Below are positions 26,338-64,000 of a stretch of 64,000 nt of DNA, piece after piece; within the stretch, counting starts at the first letter, position 1; each line of letters opens with the position of its first letter. Under the pieces are notes generated by a model, which did not search any database, was not told the origin of the DNA, and was given only the letters and a program-made list of their open reading frames with translations. Where the stretch lies: positions 62,001-126,000 of the forward strand of contig JAKMXF010000233.1 of the NCBI GenBank assembly GCA_024704765.1, written 5' to 3'. The position numbers and the translations under genes are program-made. The DNA comes from Oopsacas minuta. Taxonomy: Eukaryota; Animalia; Porifera.

Positions 26338-27004
26338 ATGAAAGATTTCCTCTACATATCATATATTATTTGTTTCATATCTGCTTCAACATTAATTGGA
26401 CCAGTATTTCTTCTGGATGAATGCAATTCAAATGTATTAGGGAAGAATTTTGTTTTGGGATTCCCTGATAATTACGAGCTACAGGAACCCAATATTCAGT
26501 TACATATCCTGTTAGTATCATTCAATACAGAAATGACTCAAGTGAAGTTGACAGGCAAGTTTCCCCTCTCAAATGGTTCCACTTTCGGTAAAATAGTATC
26601 TCTACATCCTGGTGAGTATGAACGTGTGATAGTGCCTTCAGAGTATGAAATTATAGGAACTGAGAAAAGTTTAAAAACTATTGAAATAGAATCTGATTAC
26701 AAGATATCAGTATACGCTATTCACTTAGAAGCTTTCACAACTGATGGGTACTTAGCTATCCCCTGTTGAAAATCTTGGTACTCAGTATGTTATAGCTACA
26801 TATCAGAGTACGAGGACCGCCTTTAATACATTATTTGCGATACTATCTACAACAGATAATACAGTAGTGACAGTACTGCTAAGTAATGAAGTCATTTATA
26901 ATGGCACAACCTACTCACAAGGAGATACACTGACTCTAGAGCTGAAGAGATATGAGGCTGTTCAAATTCAAAGTGCTACATCTTCTTTAGACAATGATTT
27001 AACT
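26338..27004 (+). pseudogene. Truncated IgGFc-binding-domain gene copy (signal peptide + start of domain), cut by a hAT element
   Basis: 26419-27004 is nearly identical to the reverse complement of 34386-34969. Extra C in C4 at 26760-26763 shifts the frame. Similarity stops exactly at the hAT TIR. Confidence 0.85.
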
Positions 27005-29405
27005 CAGGGGTGCCCAACTCGATTTAATTGCGGCCCACATTGGCTTCCTCAATAGTTTGGTGGGCCACATGGACCAATTTATAATTTTCAGATTTATTTA
27101 GAGAAAATTTGTTGGAATATCCAAGTGGAAATGCTACAGAAAGGGAACACACATATGAAATATTGGCAGACTACAGAAAATGATCAAAAATACTAACTAA
27201 TAAGAAACCCGAATACTCATTTTACCACCGCTAATACGAGTACAGACAATGATTTACTACTTTGACATGGATGACGATTGATGACGCATAGGTCTGACTA
27301 TATGGTCGATGTTTTGTTCCATATCCGTAGTAGCTATTCTTAATGTATCTTCGAGATGTCTATCAGTTAAAACAGTTCTGCATTTGCTTTTTACTAGCTT
27401 CATTTGGGAGAACAGTTGTTCACATATGTATGTGCTCCCAAATAAACAAGCCATCATCTTACAATGCTTGATAAGATTGGGGTAATCTGATGATGATAAA
27501 TACTTTTGATAAAAGTCCATCAGTGTGACATCATTGAATTTTGCTTTCAAGTCCTGGTTACATTACATGTCAACCAATTCTAGCTGGAGATGCTCGGGGA
27601 GTTCAATAGGTTCTAAAGGGAAATGATTTGAGAATATAGCGAAGTTTACAATATTGCTACGAAGATCTTTAAATCTATTCTCGAATTCTTTGCGCAGGGA
27701 ATTGATTTCGATTGCGTATACACCTGTATCTGGAGGGGAATGTTTTGATAAGGTTTCAAAGTGATAAAGATTTCCTTCTATTAATTGTTTTTCCCATATC
27801 TCGAGCTTTCTTCCAAAAGCGCAAATGAAGTCAAACAAATTGTGAATAAGCAGATTTTTCCTTGTAATTTTGAGTTGAGGTTATTCAAATATTGAGTGAT
27901 ATCGACCAAAAATGCCAAGTCACACAACCATAATGGATCATTGAGATGAAAAACTGGTTTCCCCTTCTCCTCCATAAAATGAAATACTTCTTCTTTGAGT
28001 TCATAAAAGCGTCGAAGCATCGCACCCCTACTTAACCATCGTACTTCCGTATAGTAAAGAAGGTCTCCATATTGAGAATCCATTTCGTCTAAAAGTTTTC
28101 GAAATTGTCGATGATTGAGTCCTCGAGCACGAATGAAGTTGACAGTTTTCACTGCTATTTCCATTACACCCTGCATTCTTAATGACTTTGAACAGAGATT
28201 TTCCTGGTGAATTATACAATGCACTTTGACTAATTTCATAGTACTACTTCCTGAATTGATCCTTTCTTTCTCCAGAAGAGCAACGAAGCCCCTTTCCTTC
28301 CCAATCATTGATGGTGCGCCATCTGTCGTTACCCCACATAAATTATTCAACTTAAGTCCGATAGCATCAATTCCATTCATCACCGCTTTATAAATATCAA
28401 CTCCAGTTGTTTTATCGTGAAGGCTGTGTAAGTTCGCCAATTCTTCTGTAAGATTAAACTTTGAATCGATTCCTCTTACAAAAACAGCAAGTTGGGCAGT
28501 ATCAGTGGCATCTGTGCTCTCATCAAGGGCCAGAGAATAGTACTGGAACTCACTCGCACGTTTTTCTAAAGTAAGTTTTAAGTCTGTTGATAAGTTTTCT
28601 ATCCTACGGCTAATTGTCATTCTTGAAAGGCTAATGTTTTCAAATAACTTCTGTTTCTCTGGGCACATAATTTGCGCCAAAGTAATAACACACTCCTTGA
28701 TAAATTCACCATCAGTAAATGGCTTATATTTCTTTGCAATAAGTTTGGAAATGGCAAAGCTTGCACGAACAGCTTTTTCTGACTCAGAATTAGTATTTGT
28801 AAAAGTATTTTGCTGGACCGAAAGTTCCCTTATTAATGATTGTACTCTATCCTTCCGTATCTGCCCTGAGCATGCTTTGTAATCTTGATGTTTAGCACTA
28901 TAGTGTCTTTGGATGTTGTACTCTTTCATCACTGCGATGACCTGCTTGCATATTAAGCAAGTTGGTTTGTTTTTGAAGTTGGTGAAAAAGTATTTCTCGG
29001 TCCAGCTGTCGTTGAAAGTTCTACTCTCGATATCAACTTTCCTTTTCTTAGAACAAGGCTCCATTAATATAAATGATATATATATTCTACAGGTAATTTA
29101 GGAGATGAGTAAACGCAGTATCTGAATTTCAATTATAAGCTTAGAATTATACTAGTTTATATTTATACACCGCTAAGGATTATTATTACTAAACACATGC
29201 ACCTGTCGTGTATTGAAAATGAATAAGAATCCTCAAAATGTCAAATACATTGAAATTCGACACCCAGTATGAATGCTATCGAAATGTGGCTTAGGAATTG
29301 TTCATGAAGAAATAGTATATATTACAAAGTGCAAATTTGCGCGGGCCGGATAAAATTATTACGCGGGCCAGATTTGGCCCGCGGGCCGTATGTTGGGCAC
29401 CCCTG
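27005..29405 (-). mobile_element. Full-length hAT DNA transposon (SPIN/Charlie/GTF2IRD2-like)
   Basis: Perfect 14-bp TIR CAGGGGTGCCCAAC / GTTGGGCACCCCTG, gcggccc/gggccgc subterminal motifs, internal transposase. Flanking 8-mers atttaact and gtgtataa do not match. Confidence 0.95.
27257..29064 (-). pseudogene. hAT transposase with one frameshift and one nonsense codon
   Basis: BED-like N-terminus (CLICK...RHY..KH), LALDESTD, TTDGAPSM, HCIIHQE, RWLS and YICEQLFS motifs. One A missing at 27855-27859 (LQGK|NLLIHN); in-frame TAA at 27563-27565 (DM*CNQDL). Confidence 0.9.
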
Positions 29406-31516: not shown

Positions 31517-34500
31517 TCATCTTCTGGACGATCTCAAGTATTGAATGATGGATAGTATGATTCCAATAACAGAAATCATGAGAAGAATAAGTAGTATAGC
31601 TACGATGATAGCGACAGTAATGAATACGCTATTACTTATTGAATTACAAGATGGGAAAGAATCGGACCAGATGCCATCTCCACTACAGCTGATTATCTCA
31701 GGGCCTTCAAGGGCAAAACCATCATAACATTGTATTCTGATAACATTACCAGCGAAATAAACAGATCCATTGAAATACCCATTCTCAACCAAACCTGGAA
31801 ACCCACAACTGATAGTTTTGACAGAATTGTTCATGATTTCTTCTACAATATTTGTAAATATCAGAGTCTCATTAGCGAATGATAACACCCCAGTAGTTAC
31901 AGCATCAAACAGACAAGGGAAAGAGTCCCCACAGAGTTCTTTAACTTCAGAACTCACTTGTTCTAGATCTGGTGAAATGAATGATGGTAGAAAAGAGGGG
32001 GATAGAATAGGTATTGTAATCGAATGGTGTTTGATAACTGAATATTGAATCAGATTCACTTATCATCCATTCTAAGCCAAATTCATAATGTATTTGTGAG
32101 AGAGTTGAATTAGTCAGAATGCTACTACCATCAGGTGACGTCAGATCATCACTAGTGTCCCCGTTAAAGTTACCAAGGAGACCTTCCATGTTCCCTTTGA
32201 ATATATCAATCAATTGAAGGAGAAATGACATAAATTCAGAGAAAAGATAGATTCTCAAAGATACTCCACTGTTGAATTGGACATTAACTTGTGAGAAATC
32301 CTCCGTAATTCTAAGAGTTACTCCATTTGCTATTCTCTTCAATAGGATACCATCTTTGAGTTGGAAGGATTCATTATCAATGAAAATGAGAGTTTGATTA
32401 AGAATATTTCTCTGTAACTGAATCTTGCTAGAATTGTGTGTTTGAATAGCAAATGCTGTGTAAACTGAAGCGCCGGTATTCAGATATATTTCCATACGAG
32501 CTTGAAATGTAAAGTTGTAGAGTGGAGATATAGCTAATGTGAATTCTCCTGCTCCATTAAAAGTGTATTGTAGTCCATCCAATGTTGTAAAATGAGGATC
32601 CCCTTGTGTATTAGCAACAAACGGGGACTCATAAGCTGAACAGTCATCAGCTGGTCTGGCTGAGGAATAATATCCACAATTATTTGTCAGGTAACAACAG
32701 GCAAACCATGGTAATACATCGTATGTGAAATGCAATGCTATATTAAAATTAGGGCTGTAGGTATCAGCTGTACCCGCTCCTATTTCAAGGTTAATAATTC
32801 CATCTGTATAACAACACTGTTGACCTGAATTAGTACTGGAGGGTGTTGCTGATCGGAAACAAATTGAAGATCCTTCATGGAAGAAGTCAATAAATTCTGA
32901 AGATTCCTGAAAATTTGTATCAGCAAGGGCTCCCATTTCAGTACAAGGACAGGGATCTAACCCGCTGGGCATTTCTTCCAGAATGTCTTCGAATGCTGCA
33001 CAAATTGATGGATCAAGTTCAGTGGAAAAAGATACTATAGTTAAGCGAGCAGTAATATATATGTGGCTTGATTGTCGTAGTACAATTACTCCAATTGTCA
33101 AATTATCATCAACAATTAATCGTCTTCTGCGAATTGGCAAAAGGGATTCTATGGTCAAAGACAGAGTACCAGAATTCACTACTGGCATCAGAGGAGACAA
33201 AAACTCCCAAACAGGGACAGCAAATGATGGAGACAATATGAGAAAGTCTAACATTAAATCATCCCTTGATTCTACAAATAACACAGGGTCCCAAGTTAAA
33301 GATATTTCTAATCCTTCAGTATAATCGATTATAGGGATATTGTCTGAGTGTTGAATTGTTATTTGTGGCAATAAGGTTTATTCATCAGCAATGTATATTA
33401 GCCCAGTGAAAGGGAAATTATCCCCAGCATCAAGAGATACATATAATGTAATGAAACCAACCTGAAAGGTTGGCAGTGTGAAACAATTTACCACATTATA
33501 TAAATCAGTAAATTCTCCTTCTAATAACTCTTCATCATTTATTCCAACTCTACACTTAACACTACTCACATCAGAGAAGATAACTCCAGATTCACAAGGT
33601 AAACTAATGGCCAGTCTCTCTCCTCCTAACTGTCGTACATTAAACGGGTTAATTGTTACAAATCGCTCACTGCTGGGTAGGGAGAGTCCAGCTGCATAGC
33701 CATATGTTTCATCACGTTCGTATCCATATACAATAGCTGACATTGGAGATGACTCATCTACAACTTGTGTGATAAAATACAATGCTTCCATTCGAGGTAA
33801 TTCTACTATTAACAACGTATAATCAGAATCACTAATAGTAGTCTCTTTCACTAGAGAGGGTAATGAATTGTTAGCAGTAACTATTGATTGATTATTCAAT
33901 CGGATTGTAGGCCTTTCATCTGTTTTGACAATTATATTCACAAAATTAATAAACCCATTAATATTGCCTCCAGCATGTGTGGGAGTAGTGAATCCTAGAA
34001 AAGGAGTGAATTGATTCTCAGAAGGAACCTGTATTAGAGAAGGATCAACAACTGAACCATTGATACGTATTAATATTTGAACGAGCAATGCTGGTTGAGT
34101 TGTTGTAATAATTCCATTTCCATACAAATCATCTTCCCATACTTCTCCTGGTCCTAATGTTATTCCCGTACCATTATATGTAAATACAGTATTACTGAAA
34201 TATGCAATCATTCGAAATCGCGAAAAGTCACCATCATCTGGTGGGTTAGAATAGAAGTGTTTAGTTCCCCAACTATTCACTGGAATACTCTGTTCTAGAA
34301 TTACATCACAAAATGAACCTACAGAATTAGCACATTGATGACCACTAATGACAGCTATAGGGTTGTTACTATCTACAATAGATCCAGTTAAATCATTGTC
34401 TAAAGAAGATGTAGCACTTTGAATTTGAACAGCCTCATATCTCTTCAGCTCTAGAGTCAATGTATCTCCTTGTGAGTAGGTTGTGCCATTATAAATGATT

Positions 34501-35050
34501 TCATTACTTAGCAGTACTGTCACTACTGTATTATCTGTTGTAGCTAGTATCGCAAATAATGTATTATCTCCGTTTCTCGTACTCTGATATGTAGCTATAA
34601 CATACTGAGTACCAAGGTTTTCAACAGGAATAGCTAAGTACCATCAGTTGTGAAAGCTTCTAAGTGAATAGCGTATACTGATATCTTGTAATCAGATTCT
34701 ATTTCAATAGTTTTTAAACTTTTCTCAGTTCCTATAATTTCATACTCTGAAGGCACTATCACACGTTCATACTCACCAGGATGTAGAGATACTATTTTAC
34801 CGAAAGTGGAACCATTTGAGAAGGGAAACTTGCCTGTCAACTTCACTTGAGTCATTTCTGTATTGAATGATACTAACAGGATATGTAACTGAATATTGGG
34901 GTTTTGTAGCGCGTAATTATCAGGGAATCCCAAAACAAAATTCTTCCCTAATACATTTGAATTGCACTCACTTCGTGCACCTACTGGTTCCAGCAATATC
35001 CCCATAGAAAAGAGAATGAATAGAAATGAGTTGCTGATATTAGCCAACAT
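31517..35050 (-). CDS. Type I membrane protein: signal peptide, IgGFc-binding domain, Ig/IPT-like domain, AMOP, VWD, Sushi, TM (SUSD2/Mesh/MUC4-like), about 1177 codons, intronless, three lesions
   Basis: ORFs 34634-35050, 33378-34523, 31947-33371 and 31517-32059 are colinear parts of one protein. AMOP CPCT...CFRS...GQQCCY; VWD GDPHFTTLDG; Sushi CGFPG...C...W..P.C; TM before YLRSSRR*. Lesions: missing base at 34641-34642, in-frame TAA 33378-33380, extra base in G5 at 31997-32001. Confidence 0.85.
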
Positions 35051-38563: not shown

Positions 38564-39874
38564 CAGGGTGTCTAATAAGTTCTGTTATACATTTTCGCGC
38601 CTTAGACAGTAGCTATTAATATACTTATGAAGTAATCTTCTAGAATTTCTTGTAGCATTTTTGGCGCTCTTTCAAATTATACCAAGTATATATCATTCAA
38701 GTTGATGATTTCCCAGAAAATCATGTTAGAAGAAATTCGTTCAAAAATTGTCACTTTTCACGAATCTGGATTTAGCAATAGTGAAATTCTAAAAAGGCTA
38801 AAAAATGATAAAGTGAGTCCCATGTTGATCTATCGCACAATAAAACGATATATAGAGACTGGCAGCGTGTCCGACAGGAAACGAATTGGTCGTCCAAGAT
38901 CCGCCCGCACACCAGCCCTGAAGAATAGTGTTAGATGTCGAATCCTAAGAAATCCCCGGCGTTCAATGCAAAAATGTCTCGTGAATTCTGTGTCAATCAC
39001 GAAACGATGCGGAAATTGGTTGTAGAGGACCTAGGAATGAAGTCCTATAAGCGGAATAACGTACACCATCTTAACGACTCCATACGTCGTAAGCGACTCG
39101 AAAGATGCATACAACTAAAAGCCCGATTCGCTCCTGGGACTGAAGATCAGATTCTCTTCTCAGATGAGAAGCTGTTCACCGTTGAGGAGGCAAGCATTCG
39201 TCAAAACGACCGTATACTTGCTTCTCGAAGTCAAGATATCCCAGATAGCATCAAGTACATTGATAGAGTCCAGAAGCCTCTTTCTCTGATGATATGGGCG
39301 GGAGTGTCGGCAGACTCACGGACAAACCTGATTTTTGTCCCCCAAGGAGTGAAAATAAACTCCCAGACGTACAGAGAACTGGTCTTGGAGCCTGAAATTG
39401 CGTCTGCGGGTGAGAAGCTCTTTCAAAACCATCCTTGGACTTACCAACAAGACTCTGCGCCTGCACATGCTTCAAAAGTATCCCAGAGTTGGTTCCGTGA
39501 GCAAAATATCGATTTCATAAGTAAGGATGAATGGCCACCATCAAGCCTAGATTTAAACCCACTCGACTATTCTGTTTGGGCAAACTTGGAGAGCAGAGCC
39601 TGTGCGAAATCTCACAAGAGTTTGGAGTCCCTCAAAGTTAGTTTGTTGAGTGAATGGCAGAAAATCCCACAGGAGGAGCTGCGAAAAGCTGTCCATCAGT
39701 TTCGGAGCAGACTAACTTCCGTAATTCATAAAAAGGGAGGCTATATTGAATGATATTTGTAATTTGTAATTAGGAACATAAGTCCTAAGAAAATGGAAAG
39801 TTTCATGGCTTTACAATGGATAAATTTGAAATTATTGGGGAATTGATATATAACAGAACTTATTAGACACCCTG
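38564..39874 (+). mobile_element. Full-length DD37D (maT/Bmmar1-type) Tc1/mariner transposon
   Basis: Perfect 26-bp TIR CAGGGTGTCTAATAAGTTCTGTTATA with TA on both sides. Transposase 38705-39753 has FSDEKLF, QQDSAPAH and, 37 residues later, LNPLDYSVW. One missing A at 38970-38974 is the only frameshift seen. Confidence 0.95.
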
Positions 39875-46900: not shown

Positions 46901-47579
46901 AGGTCAAATATTTCAAGATTTTACGCGAACTTTCAAAATCCTGTTTGGAGATTTCTCATTAGTTTACAATGAAAACACCACGGATTGATATAATCAGCGG
47001 TTCCCAGACAGCAGGAGTGTATAGGATCTATTACAATATATGGGAGAGTGTTCACAAAATGTGTAAATAATCCGCTGGATTAAATAGCGAATACAGAGAG
47101 ATTAGTGACGAGGATATTTTATAGACGTCTTAAGGTTGCTATTAACAACCTTTATCAGTAATTATCTCTATGTAATATTATTTATAAATTCGTATCATAG
47201 GTTTAGTTGAGAATATGGCAGAATTCCAGCAACAAGAAGTTCTCAACTCTTCTGGGGAACAAGGTATCCTCTTGTGGTTATTGAAGCGGATAAGATTACG
47301 TCAATTTGATGCTAACAAACTATATTCAACAGAGATACTATCTATACTACTTCAAAATAATACCGGAAACCAACAACTATTGGGTGTTAAAAATGGAATA
47401 GATTGTTTGTTAGAAGCTGTGTCTCTGTATAAGCGCAAAGAACCTGCGACTAGTGATGAGACTGAGATGGTAGAGAATCTATTTGATTGTCTTTGTATGA
47501 GTTTAACTCATCCTCCAAATAGAATTAAGTTTTTAGAAGGCGAAGGATTACAATTGATGATTTTGTTACTCAAAGATAG
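43955..47579 (+). CDS. CTNNBL1: Beta-catenin-like protein 1 (spliceosomal Prp19 complex); first four exons only
   Basis: Exons 43955-44192, 45223-45465, 45911-46186 and 47201-47579 splice in phase: MDLQELLNFQP..., RFMDSELEL, LLGHENADIA, FDANKLYSTEILSILLQ, EMVENLFDCLC, FLEGEGLQLM. No C-terminal exons recognised in the window. Confidence 0.92.
44198..44224. repeat. (TAT)n microsatellite just after the CTNNBL1 exon 1 donor
   Basis: Run of tandem TAT units; it produces the poly-Leu in the ORF track. Confidence 0.9.
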
Positions 47580-47623
47580 GTTTGTTGTTAGTATTTCTAA
47601 TGTATTTACTATTTTATACATTA

Positions 47624-47981
47624 GGCCACTGTTAGTTGGAAACATGTTTCAGCTCCACCGCCCGCATCTGATTTGGCTACCGCACTAATATGTCATTATT
47701 GTCATTATTTTTATTATTTCACAATTTACTCAATGTATTTAAACTACAAGGTGTATAACCTGGGTAATAACACAATAGAAATATCTTTTTCATAGTCTAG
47801 CCTATTCTCATATGAAATTTGACTTTAGCAATTATAATGTTTTTATGATTGAAGTCAATGAACAAATTTTCCAGCTGATATCTCACAAAATAATGAGATA
47901 ATGATAATGAACCGCCCGCCCGCATGCATGTTCAGGTGTATCTAATGTGGAGCTGAAACAAGTTTCTCATTAACAGTGACC
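47624..47981. mobile_element. PIF/Harbinger-type MITE
   Basis: TIR ggccactgttagttggaaacatgtttcagctccac / gtggagctgaaacaagtttctcattaacagtgacc, flanked by TTA on both sides. Confidence 0.75.
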
Positions 47982-51199: not shown

Positions 51200-51381
51200 T
51201 AGTAGAGTCTCCGAATAATAGACACATTGGGGACATCGCTGCTGTCCGTTTTAGGGAGTGTCCGCTTCTCGGAGACTTCTAAAGTTTTACATATATGATC
51301 GCTAATTCATTCCGTTAAAGGTTTGTCCGTTGTAGAGGGATTATCTGCTTCTCGGAGTATCCGTTTTGGGAGACTCCACTA
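51200..51381. mobile_element. pogo/Tigger-type MITE
   Basis: agtagagtctccgaat ... gttttgggagactccact-TA; partial copy at 92-151. Confidence 0.65.
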
Positions 51382-51569
51382 TATGTCGTTGTCTATATAT
51401 TGTTAATTTTCTAATTTACATATAAAAATAGCTACACAAATATACTAAAGCCTTGATTAACAATACTAAATCAAAATATATTTGTTGTTACTAGACTTTC
51501 TATACATACTCAATGAATGAAGGCTGAAAAATTAGGGGGGCTAAATGTAGAGTTAGTTAAAGAGTGTAG

Positions 51570-53438
51570 CTACACTAGGAATAGTATAGTTAACATCAAC
51601 ATGAGAGTAGAAATAGCTAGAGAGAGCACAGTTGCAGAATCTGTGGGTGTATTAGTAGGTTGTTGTGTAGTACTTCCTGTAGCAGTTGTTATAACAATTC
51701 TATCCGAAGAAACACATCTACCTACCCCGGCACCTGCATGCTGTTGGATTTCACCACCTATCACACGACCCCAAGCTAGAAGCACGTAGTATCCGTCAGG
51801 ATTATTCAAATCAGGGGTACCTAAGACATTAGTAGTGAAGGTACAGTTTATTATAGTTTGATCGTTGATGGAGTTTATTAGAGTGAGATCAGATGTGACT
51901 ATGGGAGGTCTAGCTCTAGCAGAGGCAAATCTTTCTTGAACTGCTACACCCTCATCAGAACGTACACACATGAATATGAATGAATCTGGCATACTTCGGG
52001 TAGTTGAAAGTCCCATGGCGATCCAATCTGCTGCAGCATTGTCATACTGTAACTGGAATTGTACAGTGTTATCCTCTATTGTGTAGATGGTACCGATATT
52101 AAGGGTAGTTGGGTCGGTGGTTTCAGCACAATTCGAAAACTGAATGCATCTAGCGATAGTATCACATCCTTCACCGATGAGAAGATTAGACGGTTGAGTA
52201 GGCGCTTGAGTAGTTGGATCCATTCCTGTAGCAGTTGTGATAACAATCTCACTCAAAGAAACACATCTACCAGCACTTCCATGTTGTTGGATTAATCCAC
52301 CAGATACAGTACCCCAAGCTAGAAGCACGTAGTATCCTCCACCTCTATTCAGATTGGGGCTACCTAAGACATTTGTATTGAAGGTACAGTTTATGATAGA
52401 AGCATCGTTGATGGAGTTTATTAGGGTTAGATCAGATGTGACTTCTGGAGGTCTAGCTCTAGCAGAGGCAAATCTTTCTTGGACTACGACATCCACACCA
52501 GAACGTACACACATGAATATGAATGAATCTGGCATACTTCGGGTAGTTGAAAGTCCCATGGCGATCCAATCTGCTGCAGCATTGTCATACTGTAACTGGA
52601 ATTGTACAGTGGTATCGTCTATTGTATTGATGGTACCGATATTAAGGGTAGTTGGATTGGTGGTTTCAGCACAATTCGAAAACTGAATGCATGTAGCAAT
52701 AGTATCACATCCTTGACCGATGAGAAGATTAGACGGTTGGGTAGCTGGTGGGGTGGTAGCTGGTGGGGTAGTAGCTGGTAGGGTGGTGGTAGTTGGTGGG
52801 ATAGTAGCTGATGGGGTGGTAGCTGGTGGGGTAGTAGCTGATGGGGTGGTAGCTGGTGGGGTAGTTGGATCCATTCCTGTAGCAGTTGTGATAACAATCT
52901 CACTCGAAGAAAAACATCTACCAGCACTTCCATGTTGTTGGATTAATCCACCTGTCACACGACCCCAAGCTAGAAGCACGTAGTATCCGTTAGGATTATT
53001 CAGATTAGGGGTACCTAAGACATTTGTATTGAAGGTACAGTTTATGATAGAAGCATCGTTGATGGAGTTTATTAGGGTTAGATCAGATGTGACTTCTGGA
53101 GGTCTAGCTCTAGCAGAGGCAAATCTTTCTTGAAGATTGACATTGGCACCAGAACGTACACACATGAATATGTTTGAATTTGGCATACTTTGGGTAGTTG
53201 AAAGTCCCATGGCGATCCAATCTGCTGCAGCATTGTCATACTGTAACTGGAATTGTACAGTGGTATCGTCTATGGTTGTGAAAGTACCGATACTTGGGGT
53301 TGTAGGAGCTGTGGTTGTAGCACAATTAGAAAACTGAATGCATGTTGTATCACCATCACATCCTTCACCGATAAGGTCATTTGCATGGATAACTCCGAGA
53401 CAACTTAATAGTAAACACGAAATGAGTATTTTAGACAT
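51570..53438 (-). CDS. Secreted, probably GPI-anchored protein with three tandem DOMON domains and a Thr/Pro-rich linker
   Basis: Signal peptide; three repeats of GxGC..C..F..C / WIAMGLSTT.SMP.S.IFMC / YYVLLAWG....I.QH; uncharged hydrophobic C-terminus after DSA. Confidence 0.9.
   Translation of the reverse strand: MSKILISCLLLSCLGVIHANDLIGEGCDGDTTCIQFSNCATTTAPTTPSIGTFTTIDDTTVQFQLQYDNAAADWIAMGLSTTQSMPNSNIFMCVRSGANVNLQERFASARARPPEVTSDLTLINSINDASIINCTFNTNVLGTPNLNNPNGYYVLLAWGRVTGGLIQQHGSAGRCFSSSEIVITTATGMDPTTPPATTPSATTPPATTPSATIPPTTTTLPATTPPATTPPATQPSNLLIGQGCDTIATCIQFSNCAETTNPTTLNIGTINTIDDTTVQFQLQYDNAAADWIAMGLSTTRSMPDSFIFMCVRSGVDVVVQERFASARARPPEVTSDLTLINSINDASIINCTFNTNVLGSPNLNRGGGYYVLLAWGTVSGGLIQQHGSAGRCVSLSEIVITTATGMDPTTQAPTQPSNLLIGEGCDTIARCIQFSNCAETTDPTTLNIGTIYTIEDNTVQFQLQYDNAAADWIAMGLSTTRSMPDSFIFMCVRSDEGVAVQERFASARARPPIVTSDLTLINSINDQTIINCTFTTNVLGTPDLNNPDGYYVLLAWGRVIGGEIQQHAGAGVGRCVSSDRIVITTATGSTTQQPTNTPTDSATVLSLAISTLMLMLTILFLV
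52738..52865 (-). repeat. Coding 15-bp minisatellite (TTPPA/TTPSA units)
   Basis: About 8 units of gtagctg(g/a)tggggtg on the + strand, between DOMON domains 1 and 2. Confidence 0.9.
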
Positions 53439-54431
53439 TTTCAGTTCACCTCTGTTATGTATATAGTTGAAAACAAAAATATTTAAATTATTCTTGTATT
53501 TATAGTAGTATTAGATCACCCACTCAGCGTCTGTTAACTTATCAAATATCAATCAAGAAGAGTCTTAACAATTTCTGTTATCATATTAAATATCTACCAG
53601 TTTAATTTATGAGAAGCAATTATTTGTTAGGGTGTGCTTATTTCGGACGTTTATCTGTATTAACTAAATAGAACGTGTTTATGAGATTTGTGACTTGTTT
53701 GTGAACTTGTAATTATTTAGTGCAGCTCATATTGGGACATCCTCTAATGACTTGGACGATGTGCGACGTTTGTACGTCCTTCCGCGCGGCCGCCCAAAAT
53801 CTATCAGTCAGATTATCGCGAAATTAGTATACATTTAAACATTTTGGGATAGAGATTTTACCTAATGTATGAGATTTCCTAATTGAATTTTCACACCTTT
53901 TTCTGTACGTGGAGTTGATTTTGGGATATCAGAGCATGAAATTTATAATTATACAGATTTATCATATGATTAATCATATTTTGGCGCACCTTTTCTCCTA
54001 AATTTCCAAAGCAAGATATGTATGTGACCCTCGTTTTAATACTCATACCAATGTTCCCCAACCTGGAGCCACGGTGAAAAGTTTGGAAGACAGACTCAGA
54101 CAGGAACGATATTATTAATAATTGATATTAGCCGAGTATTGCAATTACAAATTATTAATTACATTTTCCAAGTAAATTTGGATTTCATTACAATTCTGTT
54201 GAAATTAATTACTCATTTGTACTACTCCATATATGGGTTGTAGAAACTATCTAATGACACTAATCGTATTATGAACATTGATAAAATATATTTGACTAAA
54301 TTGTATACTTATTCATGCACAAAGATAGATATAACACTAAGAACAATAAAATCCTGGTTTTCGAATACACAGTCAATGAAAGGGGTGGATAAAGTAGGGA
54401 GGCTAATCCTATTGTTAGTTAAATAACGTAA

Positions 54432-55055
54432 CTACACTAAGAATAGGATAGTTAACATCAACACGAGAGTAGAAATAGAGAGAGAGAACACAGGTGCACC
54501 TCCTGTGATAACAATCTCACTCGAAGAAAAACATCTACCAGCACTTCCATGCTGTTGGATTTCACCACCTGTCACACGACCCCAAGCTAGAAGCACGTAG
54601 TATCCGTTAGGATTATTCAGATTAGGGCTACCTAAGACATTTGTAGTGAAGGTACAGTTTATGATAGAAGCATCGTTGATGGAGTTTATTAGGGTTAGAT
54701 CAGATGTGACTTCGGGAGGTCTAGCTCTAGCAGAGGCAAATCTTTCTTGGACCACGACATCCACACCAGAACGTACACACATGAATATGAATGAATTTGG
54801 CATACTTGGGGTAGTTGAAAGTCCCATGGCGATCCAATCTGCTACGGGATTATCATACTGTAACTGGAATTGTACAGTGTTATCGTCTATTGTATAGATG
54901 GTGCCGATATTAGGGGTTGTTGGAGCTGTGTTTACAGCACAATTCGAAAACTGGATGCATGTAGCCATAGTATCACATCCTTCACCGATTAGGAGATTTG
55001 CTTGGATAATTCCGAGGAAACTTAATAGTATAATTGGAACAATAAATTTCGACAT
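54432..55055 (-). CDS. Single-DOMON secreted, probably GPI-anchored protein
   Basis: Signal peptide, WIAMGLSTTPSMPNS, IQQH, tail GGAPVFSLSISTLVLMLTILFLV*. Confidence 0.9.
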   Translation of the reverse strand: MSKFIVPIILLSFLGIIQANLLIGEGCDTMATCIQFSNCAVNTAPTTPNIGTIYTIDDNTVQFQLQYDNPVADWIAMGLSTTPSMPNSFIFMCVRSGVDVVVQERFASARARPPEVTSDLTLINSINDASIINCTFTTNVLGSPNLNNPNGYYVLLAWGRVTGGEIQQHGSAGRCFSSSEIVITGGAPVFSLSISTLVLMLTILFLV

Positions 55056-56205
55056 TTTTATAGTCTACCTTTGTTAAGTAAATAGTTGAAATCAAATTTA
55101 TATTTTATTTCTGTATTATATAGGAACTTCAGTACATATTTCCGGATCCTTTGAAAATATCAAATTCCGAATAGGAAACTTAATAATATCAGTTACCATA
55201 GTTTAACGAGTTAAATTATTGCAACGTACATCTACGATAGAGATATCACATCATAGTACCACTGAATTCAAAGCTTTGCTCATTTCCAAATTCTTACTTA
55301 TTCAGCGCAGCCACAATGGCATGGATGTTTAATGACGTAGTACATCCGTCTGTCCGTCTGCGTGACCTGGAAAATTTGGAAATTGAGCGGAACAAGTTAC
55401 AAAAAGTATACTTATTAAACTAGTAATACAACAATATTTGGACAATTTGTAGATTTTAGCTGTAGTTTTTGTTGTTTTGTCTGTTATTCCATATATTAAC
55501 TTAATAAGTAAGTAAGCTAACAATAAATAATTACATTCGCAGAACTAACTATGACAAAGTTGTAAAATTGAGAGAGATTAACAGATGTGTCTCTTATGGC
55601 TATGCTCTGTGAATATTAATATCCTACAAAAATGATTGCCATATTTCCCTTGATTAGTAACACCCTCGAATATTCGCATTCAAGGAGTAATTATTCCCTG
55701 TAATTGGTTTATTTACTGTTAGTTATGATAGTAACACATGACATTTACCAATAGGTATGATTATTCAAAGACAAACGTGTTTACAAAGATCTTAACTTCC
55801 CTCTTAAGGACGCTTGTTAATAGTCAAGTTAATAATCGCCCCGGCTACAATTCAAAGATATATACAGTATGTTTTCAACGACTAATCAGCATTCCTATAC
55901 TGTGGAACTTCGTTAATACAAACAGCAACGGAGGTCCAAAATCTGTTCGCCTCATCCGGAGTAATATTAATTAAATAACCAATTAACAGCGTGTGTAGGA
56001 ACTTGATTTTGTGGCATTTTTTGTTCGAATTAACCCTATTCGTATTAACGAGGGTCTACCGTAGTTAAATCCATAAATGTTGAAAGAGGATATTTATCAA
56101 AATATCAAACAATTAACAAAAATATCGAAATTATCCATAAGTATACGATTAGCTAGAAATGCAGAAAATTTCCTTAACAAATATCAACCTAATATACATA
56201 TACAA

Positions 56206-56844
56206 CTATACGTAGTAAGAAGTGATTAATAGTGCGGCCATCGCGTAGATAAACTGTACAGCAGGTGCGGTTATAGTACCAGCCCCTAATGCATCGGTAA
56301 TTACCCTCCTCTGTGTGCTGTAGCATCTACCGCTTGATGTATGGTACTCTATATCAGTGTCGTAAGCGCCCCAGGCTAGTAGCACATAATAACCTGCACC
56401 GTAGTTTAACTCAGGTGTACGTGTGACAGGTGTAGTGAAGGTGCAGTTCAGCGTAGAAGCATAGTTAACGTAGTTTAATTCCGTGAGATAGGATGTAGTT
56501 ATAGAAGGTCGAGATCGACCAGTGGCATATCTTTCTTGGATTGTTACGCCTGAAACACCTGAGCGGTGACATAGGAATATGTAGGAGTCTGCCATTGATG
56601 CGGTGGTTGATAAGCCAATACCAATCCAGCCTGCTGCACTATTGTCATACTGCAGTTGGAATCGTACGGTGTTATTGTCTACCGTATATATAGTAGCGAG
56701 ATTAAGTGTAGCTGGGGAAGTGGTTAGCGAACAATCCGAAAACTGTAGACAGGTTACAGCACCGTTACATCCAGTACCGATGAGATTCCCGTGGATAATC
56801 CCAATACAACTTATCAGTAAATATGAGATGAGTAAATTATACAT
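56206..56844 (-). CDS. Single-DOMON secreted, probably GPI-anchored protein (divergent paralog)
   Basis: Signal peptide, WIGIGLSTTASMADS, YYVLLAWG, IEYH, hydrophobic tail. Confidence 0.9.
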   Translation of the reverse strand: MYNLLISYLLISCIGIIHGNLIGTGCNGAVTCLQFSDCSLTTSPATLNLATIYTVDNNTVRFQLQYDNSAAGWIGIGLSTTASMADSYIFLCHRSGVSGVTIQERYATGRSRPSITTSYLTELNYVNYASTLNCTFTTPVTRTPELNYGAGYYVLLAWGAYDTDIEYHTSSGRCYSTQRRVITDALGAGTITAPAVQFIYAMAALLITSYYV

Positions 56845-57446
56845 ATCACAGGAATATTTGAAATTTCACAAGGTATAATGAATTAACGAGAATATATGAC
56901 ATATATAACTTTTTAATATTAATGCATAATCAATAGTTGAAATTACATTCTTTAGCAATAGTTGACAATCACTGGCTGTCTAGAAATTATAATCTGTCTG
57001 ATTAGAATATCAAATTCAAGTAGTAACGGGCGGGCGAAATAGTTGGTAATAGAGATATCATAACTAAGACAGTAATGAGTTGATTAGCAATTTAATCCAT
57101 TACAATGTAAAATGAACTTATGAGATCACTCTATTACAATTTGTTGGCGCTGGTCTAAGCTATACACTATGTATGACCAAAATATATTAATGTGGCTGAT
57201 ATTACTATATTTAGTATTAATATAGATATCAAGTGTGAATAGATTATTCTATAGTTTGAAACTTAGCTTTGGATAATCCAACCATATATTATATTTGATT
57301 AATTATGAATAAGGCAGTAATTATACTATTAACACCAAATACATCATATTTAGTAAATTATTTGGCATAATTAGCAAGTTTACATGGGATTGTATATACG
57401 GCCTACAAATACGATAGCTCTCATAAAAACTATTTATTATTATACA

Positions 57447-59246
57447 AATCTCAAATCACCTTCTTTGCCGACTTAATTTTACCAAATTAATTTTAGTGGA
57501 TTATTGAAACTATTTTTTCTATTAAATTCCATTTTAGTAAAGTAAGATAAATTTAACTTTAAGAATCATGTTAGACATTTACAAATGGCAAAATCGAATT
57601 CTACGTCCCTGATTACCCCTATTGAACTTGTGAAGGTAATTTCTAGGATAATTTTGAAATGTTCACCAAAAGTTGTGAAAATATGATTAATCATATGATA
57701 AATCAGTGTGTATATATTTAATAGAATGACTTGACCAATATAATTGCAGTCAACATCAATACAAATACATCACAGTGTTAATTAACTTCCATACACTCCA
57801 CCAGAACTAATTTTATGCATTTATGCCTGATTGTAAAACCCTGGCTACATTTGGCTATAGTTCTTTAAGATAGGTCATTGAGTTCAATTTCAAACCTGAT
57901 CAACGTTAAGATGTACGTAGCACATATAACTACATACTTATCACTTGACAAAATGACATTTCAATATTTTTTCAGACGAAAATCAATTACATATATCAAT
58001 ATAATATTGCTAAGTAACAGTAACAGTATGAATTTCTTGAATTGGGATAAACAAAACGAAAGCTACACAACTCTCATTTCCTTGTAAATTATAGTGCAAT
58101 AGACTAAACTATAGATTACATGAACACGTGCAATCATAATTTATTGATAGAATTGTTTATCAACCACTTCCAAAGATTAATCCCACCTAAATGCAATTAA
58201 GACTTGTTTCTTCATTAGATTAAAATGTAATTTGTGCACACGTGTGTGTTCTTCAGCTTTCTTGGTAGTCAGTTTTCAGAGAACTGATGTTAATATTGAT
58301 AAGATTATGTATGTAGTTTTAGCATATAGAGTAGTTGCATTTAGCAATATTATGCAACTAGACGGTAACAAATGAGTGGTAGGTGCAAAAGTCGTGGATA
58401 TCTGGAATTCGTAGATTCCACACTATGAGATACTGTATCAGATTATCTTTTGAGGATGTTTGCTTATAAGTTATAATCATTAAACTGGGTCATCCTTTTT
58501 GCGAAAGGTTTGAAAATTATTGACCTTTTTCAGCTATATCTCCTTATACAACAACAGTAAAACCTTCAGTAAGTGAACACCCTGGGGACCAGCCAAAATG
58601 TTCACATACGAGAGGTGTTCACTTTTCATGACATTGTGCGTAGCAATGGAAAACATTTCTGACCGAGACAAGGTGTTCATTTTGGAGATGTACACTTTTA
58701 GAGGTTTACTCTATTAAAGTTGTCTTTAGTTATACTTCATGTCTAACATGTTTTTTGTTACTACAATCCGATACTTAATAATTTATGTACAATTTGGCTC
58801 CCACAGAAGTTATATGTAATCTGGGACTACAGTAACATTTAGCCGAGCATTGCTTATTAGGCATAAATGCATAAATTAGTTCTGGTGGAGTGTATGGAAG
58901 TTAATGTATTGTATTGATGTAGGCTGCAATTCTATTGTTCAAGACATTCTATTAAATATATTTACACTGATTTATCATATGATTAATCAATTTTCACACC
59001 TAATCTCTAGGATAATTTCGAAATGGTGAACATTTCAAAATTATCCTAGAAATTAGCTTCCACTAGTTCAATAGGGGTAATCAGGGACGTAGAATTCGAT
59101 TTTGCCATTTGTAAATGTCTAACATGATTCTTCAAATTAAATTTATCTTACTTTGCTAAAATGGAATTTAATAGAAAAAATAGTTTCAATAATCCACTAA
59201 AATTAATTTGGTAAAATTAAGTCGGCACAGAAGGTGGTTTGAGATT
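57447..59246. repeat. Long inverted repeat (arms 57447-57828 and 58859-59246, spacer about 1 kb)
   Basis: For example gaattctacgtccctgattacccctattgaact versus agttcaataggggtaatcagggacgtagaattc, and gtcggcacagaaggtggtttgagatt versus aatctcaaatcaccttctttgccgac. Confidence 0.9.
58555..58711. mobile_element. pogo/Tigger-type MITE nested in the inverted-repeat spacer
   Basis: cagtaaaaccttcagtaagtgaacac ... gtacacttttagaggtttact termini with internal gtgttcac repeats. Confidence 0.55.
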
Positions 59247-59362
59247 ATTTTGTTTGAAATACAGTCCTTAATTTAAGCCCAATCAAGGTTGTTTGCTGCT
59301 TCCCGCGCCAGCTAACTTTGTACCTTCTGTCTCGCTTTTTTCTTCACTCAGGTTAGAAAGTA

Positions 59363-60658
59363 CAGAGTGGCTCCAAAGTTCTTATACAAACCATTTTGTC
59401 TATAATATTTTTTCAGCATGATCTACATCATTGATTTTCTATATATAATTAATACATACTATCAGGAAGAGATTGCATAGTTATTTATTCAATATAACCA
59501 CCCTTTTTGGAAATGACAGCCCTGAGTCTGTTCGGGAATCCTTCTACTGCGGCATGCAGAGTTCTTGGGGTATCTTCTCCCATTCTCGACACAAGGAAAT
59601 CTTTAGAGAGCTAACTGTGTTGTGTGACACAGAACAAGCCTTGTTTTCCAAGATAGACCATACAGAATAGCCCATGGGATTTAAATCGGGACTGTATGGT
59701 GGCCATTCATCCTTGTGTATAAAATTGGGAATATTGTGCTTCAGCCAATCTTGGGTCGTATTGGCGGGAGCACCATCTTGTTGGAAGACAAAATGAAAAC
59801 ATGGTCTGGCTCAGACCTTTACCACAGGCTCTAATACAAGCTCTTGGTATGTTTTGGTATTGATTTTCACTCCTGGGGGGATGAAAATCAGTGGTGTCCG
59901 GCCAACAGCAGAGACCCCAGCCCAAACCATCACCGACAGCGGTTTTTTCATCCGACATATATCTGAACTTATCAGGGATCGCTGAAACTGAGGTCGAGAT
60001 GACTCTGTAGTTTTGGCTATTTGTAGCCTCTTCTATGGTGAAAATATTCTCATTTGAGAAAAAGGTATTTTCGAGAACCCCAATAGCGTGTAGAGCAAGT
60101 AGGCTCTTACTCCGGGACACTCTCTTTTCTTTCACCGACCCAGATAGGAATTGTACCTTTTTGCGTTTAAAAGAGCGCATTCATAAGTCCCTTTTGACAA
60201 CCTTTTGTATTGCTCGGCGAGTTGTATTGAGCTCCAAGGCCATTTTCCTCATCGAACGGTGTGGGTTCCGCAGAATCCGTTCTCGCACCACTTTCTTGAG
60301 AGCTGGGGTCGTTACAGAGCATGGACGACCAGATCTTGGCTTGTTTACAGTGTCTCCAGTTTCTTTATATCGATTTATCGTCCTGTAGATAAATGACCTA
60401 CGTCCTTTTGCAATATTCAGCAGTTTCAAAATTTCTGAGGGACTTTTCCCCGCCACATGCAACTCAATAATTGCTGACCTCTCAGATTCCATGGTGGTCA
60501 ATCGCAATTTTTTTTCGAAATAGTATACACTAAATTGAAATAATATTCGTTAGGAAGCGTATGAGGTATGTCATGGAAGAGTAAACTATTGAGAATACTT
60601 CCTGATAATGGTTGTATATTAATTGTGATTTTGTATCAGAACTTTGGAGCCACCTTTG
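59363..60658 (-). mobile_element. Full-length but degenerate maT-type Tc1/mariner element
   Basis: TA-cagagtggctccaaagttcttataca ... tgtatcagaactttggagccacctttg-TA. Transposase remnants 60492 to 59485 (RSGRP, RNPHRSMRKMA, ...KKGGYIE*) with several frameshifts and stops. Confidence 0.9.
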
Positions 60659-60662
60659 TATA

Positions 60663-61510
60663 CAGGGTGACACATAAATACTGTTACAACTTTTAAAACT
60701 ACCATATTGTAGATGAATATAATTCAATAGCGTTGACACTTATCCAATATATTGTCTACATATCTATTTTATCTCAATAAATCACACCAGCTACATCTCG
60801 CTTAGAAGTTTTATAATTCAACATTTTGTAATGGAGACTCGTCGTTCAGCTGTTATTGAGTTATTCAAGGCCGGAAAATGCAGAAGTGAAATTGCCTCTT
60901 TGCTCAGTTACAATAGGATGTTTATTTCGCGAACTTTGTCACGGTTTGCTGATACAGGGGACGTGTTAGACCGACCACGACCTGGCCGTCCACGTACTGC
61001 ACGGACAATTTCTTTGACCAAGAGGGTGCTACAACGGATTAAACGAAATCCCGCCCGAAGCATCCGAAAAATGGCCATTGAAACAAATTCAAACAGGGAA
61101 TCGATGCGGAGGCTTGTTTGTAACGATTTGGGTATGAAAGCGTACAAAATGAAAAAAAGACAACTCCTCACAGCCAAAAATAAAAGTATGAGGTTGGAAA
61201 GATGCAAGGCCATGCTTTCACGTTTCACCAATGGTCGACACAAGCAGATCCTTTTCTCTGATGAGAAATTATTTACTGTTCAGCAGGTCCTAAACAAGCA
61301 AAATCATAGGATTTTAGCCACCGATAAGAGTACTTTGCCTGAATCTACTTTCCGGGTCTCTAGAACGCAGAAACCAGCTTCAGTGATGGTATGGGCCGGG
61401 GTTACTGCAACTAGTCGGACACCTTTGATATTTATCCCCCAAGGTGTGAAAATCAACCAATCGGTTTATCAGGAATCAATTCTTGAGAATGTTTTGAAGC
61501 CTTAGGCACA
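60663..61510 (+). mobile_element. 3'-truncated maT-type Tc1/mariner element
   Basis: TA-cagggtgacacataaatactgttaca left TIR, related to that of 38564. ORF 60831-61505 has the HTH region and FSDEKLF and stops at ENVLKP* before the second catalytic Asp. No right TIR. Confidence 0.9.
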
Positions 61511-61621
61511 CTGGTATGATAAGCATGCACGTGTATCTTAGTTGTGTATGAGCGACTATAAGTAAGAGAATATAAATATATGATCGTGCTCTCGATAAAT
61601 TAATTAAGGAAGCTATCTGAA

Positions 61622-62269
61622 ATGTCCAGATTAATTTTTTCAATTTTACTATTAAGTTGTCTCGGAATTATCCAAGCAAATCTCCCAATCGGTGAAGGAT
61701 GTGATACTATCGCTACATGCATTGAGTTTTCTGATTGTGCTGTAAACAGAGCTCCAACAACCCCTAATATCGGCACCATCTATACAATAGATAATACTAC
61801 TGTACAATTCCAGTTACAGTATGATAACGCTGCAGCAGATTGGATCGCCATGGGACTTTCAACTACCCCAAGTATGCCAGATTCATTCATATTCATGTGT
61901 GTACGTTCTGGTGTGGATGTCGTAGTCCAAGAAAGATTTGCATCTGCTAATGCTCGACCTCCCGAAGTTACATCTGATCTCACTCTAATAAACTCTGCTA
62001 ACGATGCTTCTATCATAAACTGTACCTTCACTTTACCTGTATTAGGTAATCCTGATTTGAATAATCCTGAGGGATACTATGTGCTTCTTGCTTGGGGTGG
62101 TGTGTCTGGTGGATTAATCCTTCAGCATTTAGGTCCAGGACATGGTAGATGTGTTTCTTCGACCAGAATGATAATCACAACTGCTACAGGAGGTCCATCT
62201 TCTGCATCTATGCTCTCTTTATCTGTTTCTACTCTCGTGTTGATGTTAACTATACTCTTCTTAGTGTAG
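61622..62269 (+). CDS. Single-DOMON secreted, probably GPI-anchored protein
   Basis: Signal peptide, WIAMGLSTTPSMPDS, ILQH, tail SSASMLSLSVSTLVLMLTILFLV*. Confidence 0.9.
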   Translation: MSRLIFSILLLSCLGIIQANLPIGEGCDTIATCIEFSDCAVNRAPTTPNIGTIYTIDNTTVQFQLQYDNAAADWIAMGLSTTPSMPDSFIFMCVRSGVDVVVQERFASANARPPEVTSDLTLINSANDASIINCTFTLPVLGNPDLNNPEGYYVLLAWGGVSGGLILQHLGPGHGRCVSSTRMIITTATGGPSSASMLSLSVSTLVLMLTILFLV

Positions 62270-62746
62270 TTACATTATTTTACCCATTGTATAATTAGCT
62301 CACCTACTTTATCGTCTTTAACTGCCCCATTGACTGTGTAATTGTACAGCTAGACTTGTCGTATCTATTTCTTTTTTGTTTCTGAGAATTCAATACTGTT
62401 ACTCAATACTCATGGTTATGAAAAGTGTTCTTCTAATTTTGGATCATTTTTATGATAAAAATTTGTATCATTATTCGTCTGAAAGATAGGGAAGGTTTCA
62501 GTTGCAGTTGCCCTAAGCCTTTACTATTTTTAGGATGTCTAAAGTTTCTATTGCTCATATATGGATCAATATATGAGTAATTATTTCAACCGGATTGCAA
62601 TTGCATTCCCAATTTACTTGTATACGATATACTAGAGGATGCTATGGATATACTTTATTGCACCTAATATGCGCAAGGTATTCTCCAGCACGACAAAACC
62701 TTGGGAACTCCATAATTTGGCATCCTTTTGGACTTAGGTGAATGCC

Positions 62747-62883
62747 CAGTGGCGGCGCTAACCAGCCGATACTGGTAGTGCACGCTTACGTCACAGGTTG
62801 GACACAGGTTATTAAACTGGGGGAATACTTACATTAATGACGTGGGGTACAAGACCCACCTGGCCCCCCTCGCGCCGCTTCTG
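62747..62883. mobile_element. Short GC-rich MITE-like element
   Basis: cagtggcggcgc ... gcgccgcttctg (10/12 inverted match); no clear TSD. Confidence 0.4.
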
Positions 62884-63882
62884 GGTGAAGGTGTTAAAAT
62901 GTGATTAATCATATGATAAACCTGTGTTTTTATTTCATGCTCTGTAGTCTCTACTCACAACATTACGCTAACACCAAGTTGAAACTTAAGCATCCTTTAA
63001 AACAACTTCAAATACAAAGGTGTGAATATATGAATGATCACCGAAAACCGCCGCAGGGTTGGAAAATACTCACGATTTATTTGATTTAAATCAGATTTTT
63101 ATATATAAACTTGCTTAATTCAATATTTTATCTTCTGATAATCACGTAGAATTCTAGAATAAATTTCACAATATACGTATAATAGAATGTTTGTCAATGA
63201 AGATAACGAAAAATTTATTAATGAAGAAAGCGAAAATATCGAACACATTATTAAGTATCATTAACGATACATCTATTGTTCTCTGAAGCAATCACACTTT
63301 TATCAAATAAGAAACATTGAAGAAATGTACTAAAGGTGATATATTTCCAACAATCAAATAATAGGATTTTGATTTTTTTGAGTGATTTAAATCAAAACAA
63401 CCCTGCTGAAAAGGTGTGAAAATTCTCTTTAGAAAATTCATACCCTAGGTACAAAACTCCACTCCTAAATATGTATATGTACTAATTTTCGCGTTAATCG
63501 TGCCAATAGATTTCGGATGACCGCGCGGACAGACATACAGACATCGCACATTGTTCATTTGAGCATCTCTCAATAGAAGTTGCACTAGAACATTTCAAGT
63601 TCATAAGTTAGTTCCAAATCTCATAAACATATGAATTTTGTTAATAAGGTGAACCGCCGAAATGTGGTAGAAGCATTCATGTAGGGTACAATTGATTGCC
63701 TAAATTAAACTCGAATATATTGCAACATAATTGTTGAGACTACGAAATTGATATTTAATATATTTATAAATACTGAGATATGTTACAAGTATGCACTATG
63801 CTCCTCTGAATACCCCCAAGAACATAAATAGATTCGCATTTTCAACTATTTACATAAGTAACATAACCTGGGGAACTGAAAA

Positions 63883-64000
63883 TGTTTAAAATACTCATTT
63901 CAATTTTACTATTAAATTGTCTCGGAATTATCCAAGCAAATCTCCCAATCGGTGAAGGATGTGGTACTATCGCTACATGCATCCAGTTTTCGAATTGTGC
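63883..64000 (+). CDS. Fifth DOMON-family gene, 5' end only (runs off the window)
   Basis: Hand translation MFKILISILLLNCLGIIQANLPIGEGCGTIATCIQFSNC, nearly identical to the N-terminus of 61622-62269. Not in the ORF track. Confidence 0.85.

Follow-up and report, generated by a model that had tools for sequence, protein, structure and literature searches.

Stand-alone FRRS1/SDR2-type DOMON genes in tandem in the glass sponge Oopsacas minuta: candidate extracellular b-type cytochromes

Mouse FRRS1L, the closest architectural match to the proteins considered here, has been demonstrated by mass spectrometry to be attached to a glycosylphosphatidylinositol (GPI) anchor at S317, and a full-length, uncut form of it also exists (PMC5500892). 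In plants, AIR12 carries one heme-type DOMON domain on an outward-facing GPI anchor. Here we describe a cluster of stand-alone DOMON genes from Oopsacas minuta (Hexactinellida), located in a stretch of 64,000 nucleotides (positions 62,001 to 126,000 of the forward strand of contig JAKMXF010000233.1, assembly GCA_024704765.1), below referred to as the window. The cluster represents a tandem expansion, specific to this lineage, of FRRS1/SDR2-type DOMON genes encoding the extracellular module only, and on balance we favor the reading of its products as GPI-anchored extracellular b-type cytochromes.

At the sequence level, the sponge proteins share with FRRS1L a signal peptide, a single DOMON of the FRRS1 type and a hydrophobic signal at the C-terminus; one gene (g1 below) departs from this scheme by its three domains. 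Unlike FRRS1L, they come from tandemly expanded genes, with two- and three-domain forms among them, and the N-terminal extension found in vertebrate FRRS1L is missing. The hemichordate and mollusc proteins named FRRS1L-like, or short "ferric-chelate reductase 1" proteins, retain the Met and His residues discussed below, as the sponge proteins do; still, in our domain tree the FRRS1L-like hemichordate proteins branch apart from the sponge clade. With FRRS1, SDR2 and CG8399 (the CYBDOM proteins) the sponge proteins share the DOMON subfamily, the N-terminal cysteines of the GC..C..C type and the aligned Met and His, but they have neither the reeler nor the cytochrome b561 domain, nor the acidic SxDxxMGxD loop.

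The first-pass annotation of this window presumed that no free GPI-anchored DOMON exists in animals and that a transmembrane anchor holds FRRS1L. This premise does not survive, given the S317 attachment of FRRS1L and the existence of tailed stand-alone DOMON proteins with a signal peptide, Met and His in Saccoglossus (230 aa), Glandiceps (232 aa, named FRRS1L-like) and Argopecten (214 aa), as well as of a tailed two-domain protein with the same features in Rhopilema (483 aa). A free FRRS1-type DOMON of the lipid-anchored type is an existing animal design. The proposed analogy with AIR12 holds for the design, the sponge anchor and heme being predicted, but does not extend to family membership, as the DOMON of AIR12 is of another family: none of the four complete sponge proteins matches Pfam DUF568 (PF04526) at E up to 1, the family which the ESM Atlas lists for the plant clusters taken as those of AIR12. 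Judged by sequence, the sponge proteins are analogues of AIR12 by convergence or domain shuffling, and not members of its family.

Genes of the cluster and their transcription

Both the listing of open reading frames (ORFs) and tblastn identify four complete intronless DOMON genes with six complete domains, three of them in g1 and one in each of g2, g3 and g4; the sequence and tblastn add a partial gene at the window edge. The first-pass annotation listed five complete intronless paralogs and a partial gene; the absence of introns, the partial gene and the count of six domains stand, while the number of complete genes is corrected to four. The features of the locus are as follows.

51570..53438, minus strand: g1, 622 aa; a signal peptide, then three DOMON domains joined by Thr/Pro-rich linkers, and an uncharged hydrophobic tail at the C-terminus
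52734..52886, minus strand: mucin-like Thr/Pro-rich linker of g1 between domains 1 and 2, identified as the gap between tblastn domain matches and by translation
54432..55055, minus strand: g2, 207 aa; signal peptide, single DOMON, hydrophobic tail; the protein chosen for structural modeling
56206..56844, minus strand: g3, 212 aa; single DOMON; older paralog, with a tail type common to other species
61622..62269, plus strand: g4, 215 aa; single DOMON; on the strand opposite to g1–g3
63882..64000, plus strand: g5, partial; first 39 codons, encoding a signal peptide and the beginning of the Cys motif; the window ends within the gene
59707..61505, both orientations: two decayed Tc1/mariner-type transposase remnants in opposite orientations, identified by ORFs and matches to HTH_32, HTH_29 and HTH_Tnp_Tc3_2

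The linker between domains 2 and 3 of g1 is shorter than that between domains 1 and 2. The g5 fragment is 72% identical over its 39 aa (tblastn), and no more family fragments are found by tblastn in the window at E<1e-3. One member of the cluster corresponds to NCBI LOD99_2896, on the same 676-kb contig.

All four complete proteins score above the cutoff of Pfam DOMON (PF03351; 33.7, 34.9, 45.6 and 98.4 bits against the cutoff of 32.7), the highest score belonging to g1, where the match covers three stretches, and a chance match is ruled out. All six domains carry the motifs W[IM][AG][IM]GLSTT.SM, containing the Met, and I..H...GRC, containing the His, and every domain has six Cys and an N-C-T sequon. 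At each N-terminus there is a hydrophobic h-region, and the residue two places ahead of the conserved [LP]IG.GC motif is A or G. The complete genes end in 22–33 uncharged residues directly followed by an in-frame stop; the last 12–18 residues are strongly hydrophobic (mean Kyte–Doolittle value of 1.6–2.8 over the last 14), with G, A or S a few positions upstream. The tails thus have the usual look of a GPI signal, where both signal-peptide and GPI-tail calls come from our own heuristics based on hydropathy and residue size. The earlier claims of DOMON domains with Met and His in all six copies, and of a signal peptide and an uncharged hydrophobic C-terminus after small residues in every complete gene, are in agreement with these data.

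For transcription, four public runs of one study (X1–X4) were mapped over positions 51300–57200. Three of them are flat, with X1 at 201.7 across g3, and X3 and X4 mostly at ~60–700, with two repeat bins at ~1,500–2,300. In X2, by contrast, the ORFs have depth of 5,000–130,000 versus 10–80 in the spacers, that is, are 100–1000 times deeper: 5e3–4.5e4 over g1 versus 40–55 in the spacer, 2e4–7e4 over g2, and 1.0–1.3e5 over g3 versus 10–34 in its flanks. The depth returns to background within ~200 nt of each stop, and the pattern is that of units comprised of an ORF with short untranslated regions. We read X2 as RNA because copy number cannot yield a 1000-fold contrast and because, according to the genome paper, RNA-seq was made in the same project as the runs. 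On this reading, the genes are transcribed as unspliced single-exon units. No AATAAA or ATTAAA is present within ~390 nt of any stop, and hence the transcript ends are placed by the fall in depth.

The first-pass annotation also named splicing of the C-termini into further transmembrane or b561 exons as an observation that would speak against stand-alone genes. No splice joint leaving any C-terminus is seen in the four runs over this region, although contigs can miss rare forms; hence the ORFs are not exons of a b561 gene. The only joints, 54278>54332 and 55923>56038, have been rejected as introns, as their ends are non-canonical and they are present in all four runs, even the flat, DNA-like ones. 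These spacer skips of 53 and 114 nt, together with a one-base insertion after position 53855, occur in contigs of all four runs and represent indel alleles of the spacers or differences in their assembly. The spacers of 1–1.6 kb contain no ORF of at least 100 aa, and downstream of g4 there are only short ORFs, of 40–62 aa. The four proteins have no match to cytochrome b561 (Pfam PF03188), and a search for b561 in the window returned none, as previously claimed; the sole unexplained ORF with several hydrophobic segments (12424–13452, plus strand, 342 aa) has no Pfam match at E≤1e-4 and is not a b561.

Family placement and the candidate heme site

A profile search of 1.84 billion representatives yielded 330 matches. 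Closest among the named relatives are ferric-chelate reductase 1-like proteins of animals (E of 1e-33 and weaker; 1.6e-33 for a Dendronephthya FRRS1-like protein), in which DOMON is fused to cytochrome b561 and sometimes to reeler, from cnidarians, echinoderms, molluscs and fish. Among 360 domain hits, the Met column is M in 341 of the 352 ungapped ones and the His column is H in 264 of 298. In 60 diverse members the only invariant columns are C27, C33, C39, M85, G159 and H169 (here and below, g2 numbering). By a simple hydropathy count in 168 retrieved proteins, 64 have at least four transmembrane segments (b561-like) after the DOMON, and 32 have a terminal hydrophobic tail. We classify the sponge domains by this similarity as FRRS1/SDR2-type DOMONs, in line with the initial assignment, which the nearest named relatives and the invariance of Met85 and His169 bear out.

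Word-index searches retrieve close relatives only, in a few ENA assemblies and again as tandem arrays, and the same stand-alone genes are present in two other assemblies; when the 60-sequence profile or the Glandiceps FRRS1L-like protein is the query, such searches return only the sponge clade or the query itself. One ENA record, ERZ781357 (locus L004, 3001–7731), encodes an intronless protein of 1576 aa with 8–9 DOMON repeats and a terminal hydrophobic segment; a second DOMON gene adjoins it, and its domains lie on a very long tree branch. A eukaryote-style stand-alone DOMON is also recorded for a bacterium (WP_411022951.1, "Salmonella sp. s51228"), its contigs being 644 and 1008 nt long. Besides the DOMON, the protein comprises a signal peptide, a stalk rich in Thr and a hydrophobic tail. 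In the tree it is adjacent to the sponge clade (SH-aLRT, the approximate likelihood-ratio branch support, of 96), and it probably stems from invertebrate contamination of the bacterial record.

Published HHpred alignments equate the Met and His of the family with the heme ligands of cellobiose dehydrogenase (CDH), and both residues are missing from sugar-binding DOMONs and DBH (PMC10691727). In DBH, the DOMON lacks both heme axial ligands and an open pocket (PMC4846438); it shares Pfam PF03351 and the fold with the sponge domains, but these keep both ligands. In plant HYP1, M90 and H174 were selected by modeling and mutated (M90L, H174L) to test these positions (PMC10784544), and the spacing of 84 residues between M85 and H169 is the same as between M90 and H174 of HYP1.

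The AlphaFold2 model of g2, built with the 60-sequence alignment, has pLDDT of 89.1 and the beta-sandwich fold of DOMONs, with Z of 12–13 to the DOMON-type domains of DBH, CDH and pyranose dehydrogenase. Its top structural matches in PDB are the heme-b domain of pyranose dehydrogenase (6jt6, Z 13.4) and CDH (Z 11.9–12.7; 1d7b, 12.6), while CBM9 sugar binders score Z 7.5 at most. The likeness to these fungal cytochromes (1d7b, 4qi3, 6jt6; Z 11.9–13.4) extends over ~147 residues, with Met and His at corresponding places in the chain, although the identity is just 13–15%, and the fungal domains are fused or coupled to a flavin or PQQ (pyrroloquinoline quinone) dehydrogenase. In the aligned ranges M85 lies close to residue 66 of CDH, where the ligand is Met65, and H169 close to residue 159, where it is His163; the equivalence to the CDH ligands is that of the published HHpred alignment of family members and of structural ranges rather than single residues. 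A heme-type assignment is a reasonable prediction from sequence and model. Pfam CDH-cyt (PF16010, cutoff 27) gives 59.9 bits for g1, summed over its three domains, but stays below the cutoff in the single-domain proteins.

Proposed role and competing explanations

In the mechanism that we propose, each product would enter the secretory pathway, form three disulfides and carry the conserved N-glycan sequon. It would most likely be cut at a small residue before the hydrophobic tail and transferred to a GPI anchor, as FRRS1L and AIR12 are, so that the anchored protein would face outward from the syncytial membrane. One b-type heme would most likely sit between Met85 and His169 of each domain, and the domains may pass single electrons from a membrane b561-type reductase, encoded elsewhere, to an outside acceptor, as in AIR12. 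The acceptor is less likely to be iron at a site of the SDR2/CG8399 type, with the acidic pocket missing. The GPI anchor, the bound heme, and both the donor and the acceptor of electrons are inferred in this scheme. That abundant GPI-anchored b-type cytochromes on the syncytium and a separate b561 reductase together form a trans-membrane electron path like that of AIR12/CYBDOM is a more tentative suggestion, and a doubtful one.

A number of observations weigh against the cytochrome reading. We know of no heme or redox measurement for any animal stand-alone DOMON. The human DBH DOMON (4zel), which has no heme ligands, fits the g2 model equally well (Z 12.8), and hence the fold alone does not decide heme binding. 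Searches of PDB by sequence, with a single protein, an 11-sequence profile or the 60-sequence profile, give no relevant match, so that the link to CDH is drawn from the fold and the published HHpred alignment. The single-domain proteins fall below the CDH-cyt cutoff, with 23.6 bits for g2, 21.3 for g4 and no match for g3. The record of X2 carries no RNA label, and its RNA nature is read from the depth pattern. Moreover, the acidic SxDxxMGxD loop, where the iron of CG8399/SDR2 has been proposed to bind (PMC10691727), is replaced in the sponge clade by S-T-[TS]-x-S-M-P-[DN]-[ST], with T or S at position +2 in all 27 domains and S, T or N at position +8, which makes direct iron reduction, as proposed for SDR2/CG8399, less likely. 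Finally, FRRS1L has a non-redox role in the assembly and biogenesis of AMPA receptors (PMC5500892).

The last point bears on the main rival, which we consider unlikely, but to be taken seriously: that the sponge proteins are non-redox proteins of the surface or the endoplasmic reticulum, their DOMON serving as a binding or chaperone module, as in FRRS1L, or functioning in adhesion or the matrix, like the DOMON of Knickkopf/Skeletor, with any heme structural or absent. A receptor-assembly factor, FRRS1L, shares their architecture, and the nearest clusters by features in the ESM Atlas are those of FRRS1L (0.96 and 0.94). The missing acidic metal pocket and the relaxed dN/dS (ratio of nonsynonymous to synonymous substitution rates) of 0.4–0.7 among the young copies point the same way, while the mucin-like linkers and multi-domain forms would suit a surface coat. 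On the other hand, every copy, like the FRRS1-type family as a whole, strictly retains Met and His, whereas heme-free DOMONs do not have them, and the hemichordate FRRS1L-like proteins stand apart from the sponge clade.

A separate question, independent of function, is whether the tail is a true single-pass membrane anchor rather than a GPI signal, which we regard as improbable. The 12–18 strongly hydrophobic residues, the existence of uncut FRRS1L and the conservation of the g3-type tail sequence between species are consistent with such an anchor; however, nothing follows the hydrophobic stretch, which has no charged flanking residue and is short for a bilayer span, and a small G, A or S lies 8–12 positions upstream of it.

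Still less probable is that the proteins capture or transport heme instead of transferring electrons, collecting it from digested bacteria at the feeding surface. The ligand evidence would be the same as for a cytochrome, the many domains per protein would raise the capacity, and the lack of an iron pocket and the very high coverage in the RNA-like run X2 would agree with this role. Yet a six-coordinate heme with Met and His ligands, as in CDH and AIR12, is typical of electron-transfer sites and implies tight binding rather than exchange, and we know of no heme-uptake DOMON. The possibility that the ORFs are exons of larger DOMON–b561 genes, suggested by the b561 fusions of most relatives (the 64 of 168 proteins counted above), is largely refuted by the stops after each tail, the spacers, the fall of X2 depth with no joints other than the indels, and the presence of the same stand-alone genes in the two other assemblies.

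Origin, neighborhood and meaning of the cluster

In the domain tree, which left out vertebrate FRRS1L, AIR12 and DBH DOMONs, the sponge clade is monophyletic (SH-aLRT 98); its neighbors are a Sycon multi-DOMON protein and a mislabeled stand-alone protein, followed by cnidarian FRRS1-like proteins. Although the deep forks lack resolution, the stand-alone hemichordate proteins are located elsewhere in the tree, which fits a repeated origin of the stand-alone form.

A species-specific clade (SH-aLRT 100) unites the three domains of g1 with g2 and g4, while g3 lies outside it. Within this clade the synonymous divergence (dS) is 0.14–0.37 and dN/dS is 0.4–0.7, while dS between g3 and the other copies is ~1.0–1.2, that is, g3 is older. 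All copies have kept the Met, His and Cys despite dN/dS of 0.3–0.7. Another species has its own three-domain protein comprised of near-identical repeats. On the same 676-kb contig, beyond the window and 23 locus tags from LOD99_2896, there is a two-domain paralog, LOD99_2873, with 82% identity to g1; hence the DOMON family in the O. minuta genome is larger than the window shows.

The Tc1/mariner remnants are located between g3 and g4, at the strand switch of the cluster, and do not belong to the gene family. Elsewhere in the window, a mariner/Tc1-type transposase ORF of 272 aa (38935–39753, plus strand) looks much better preserved than these remnants. A CTNNBL (catenin-beta-like) gene (47215–47688, plus strand) lies beside the cluster, and in an ENA assembly CTNNBL also adjoins a DOMON cluster (locus L002, 1548–2186 and 17214–19446), so this neighborhood is conserved between species. 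Farther away, two ORFs of 143 and 138 aa (26338–26769, plus strand, and 34634–35050, minus strand) share ~110 nearly identical residues in inverted orientation. Between them there are a zinc-finger/transposase-like ORF (27781–29064) and a large gene of the IgGFc-binding/AMOP/VWD/sushi type (31517–34523). The ORF at 34634 looks like the first exon of the latter gene, and the copy at 26338 like a duplicated exon.

What the cluster represents is a known architecture that has expanded and not a new system, as FRRS1L in animals and AIR12 in plants share the design. This DOMON family is mentioned in neither of the two glass-sponge genome papers, and this absence, together with the very high coverage in the RNA-like run and the expansion in this sponge lineage, points to an unstudied surface function. 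Animal FRRS1-type DOMONs have reportedly been predicted to be cytochromes since 2007, and to our knowledge plant AIR12 and the fungal CDH-type domains are the only ones whose cytochrome nature has been demonstrated. Should the heme prediction hold, the small, intronless single-domain proteins of O. minuta would be convenient material for demonstrating that animal FRRS1-type DOMONs are cytochromes, and, if true, this would be the first free extracellular DOMON cytochrome demonstrated in an animal. The prediction is also relevant to what FRRS1L, an epilepsy gene, carries: if it is true, FRRS1L-type proteins in general, including that of the human disease gene, would be heme proteins.

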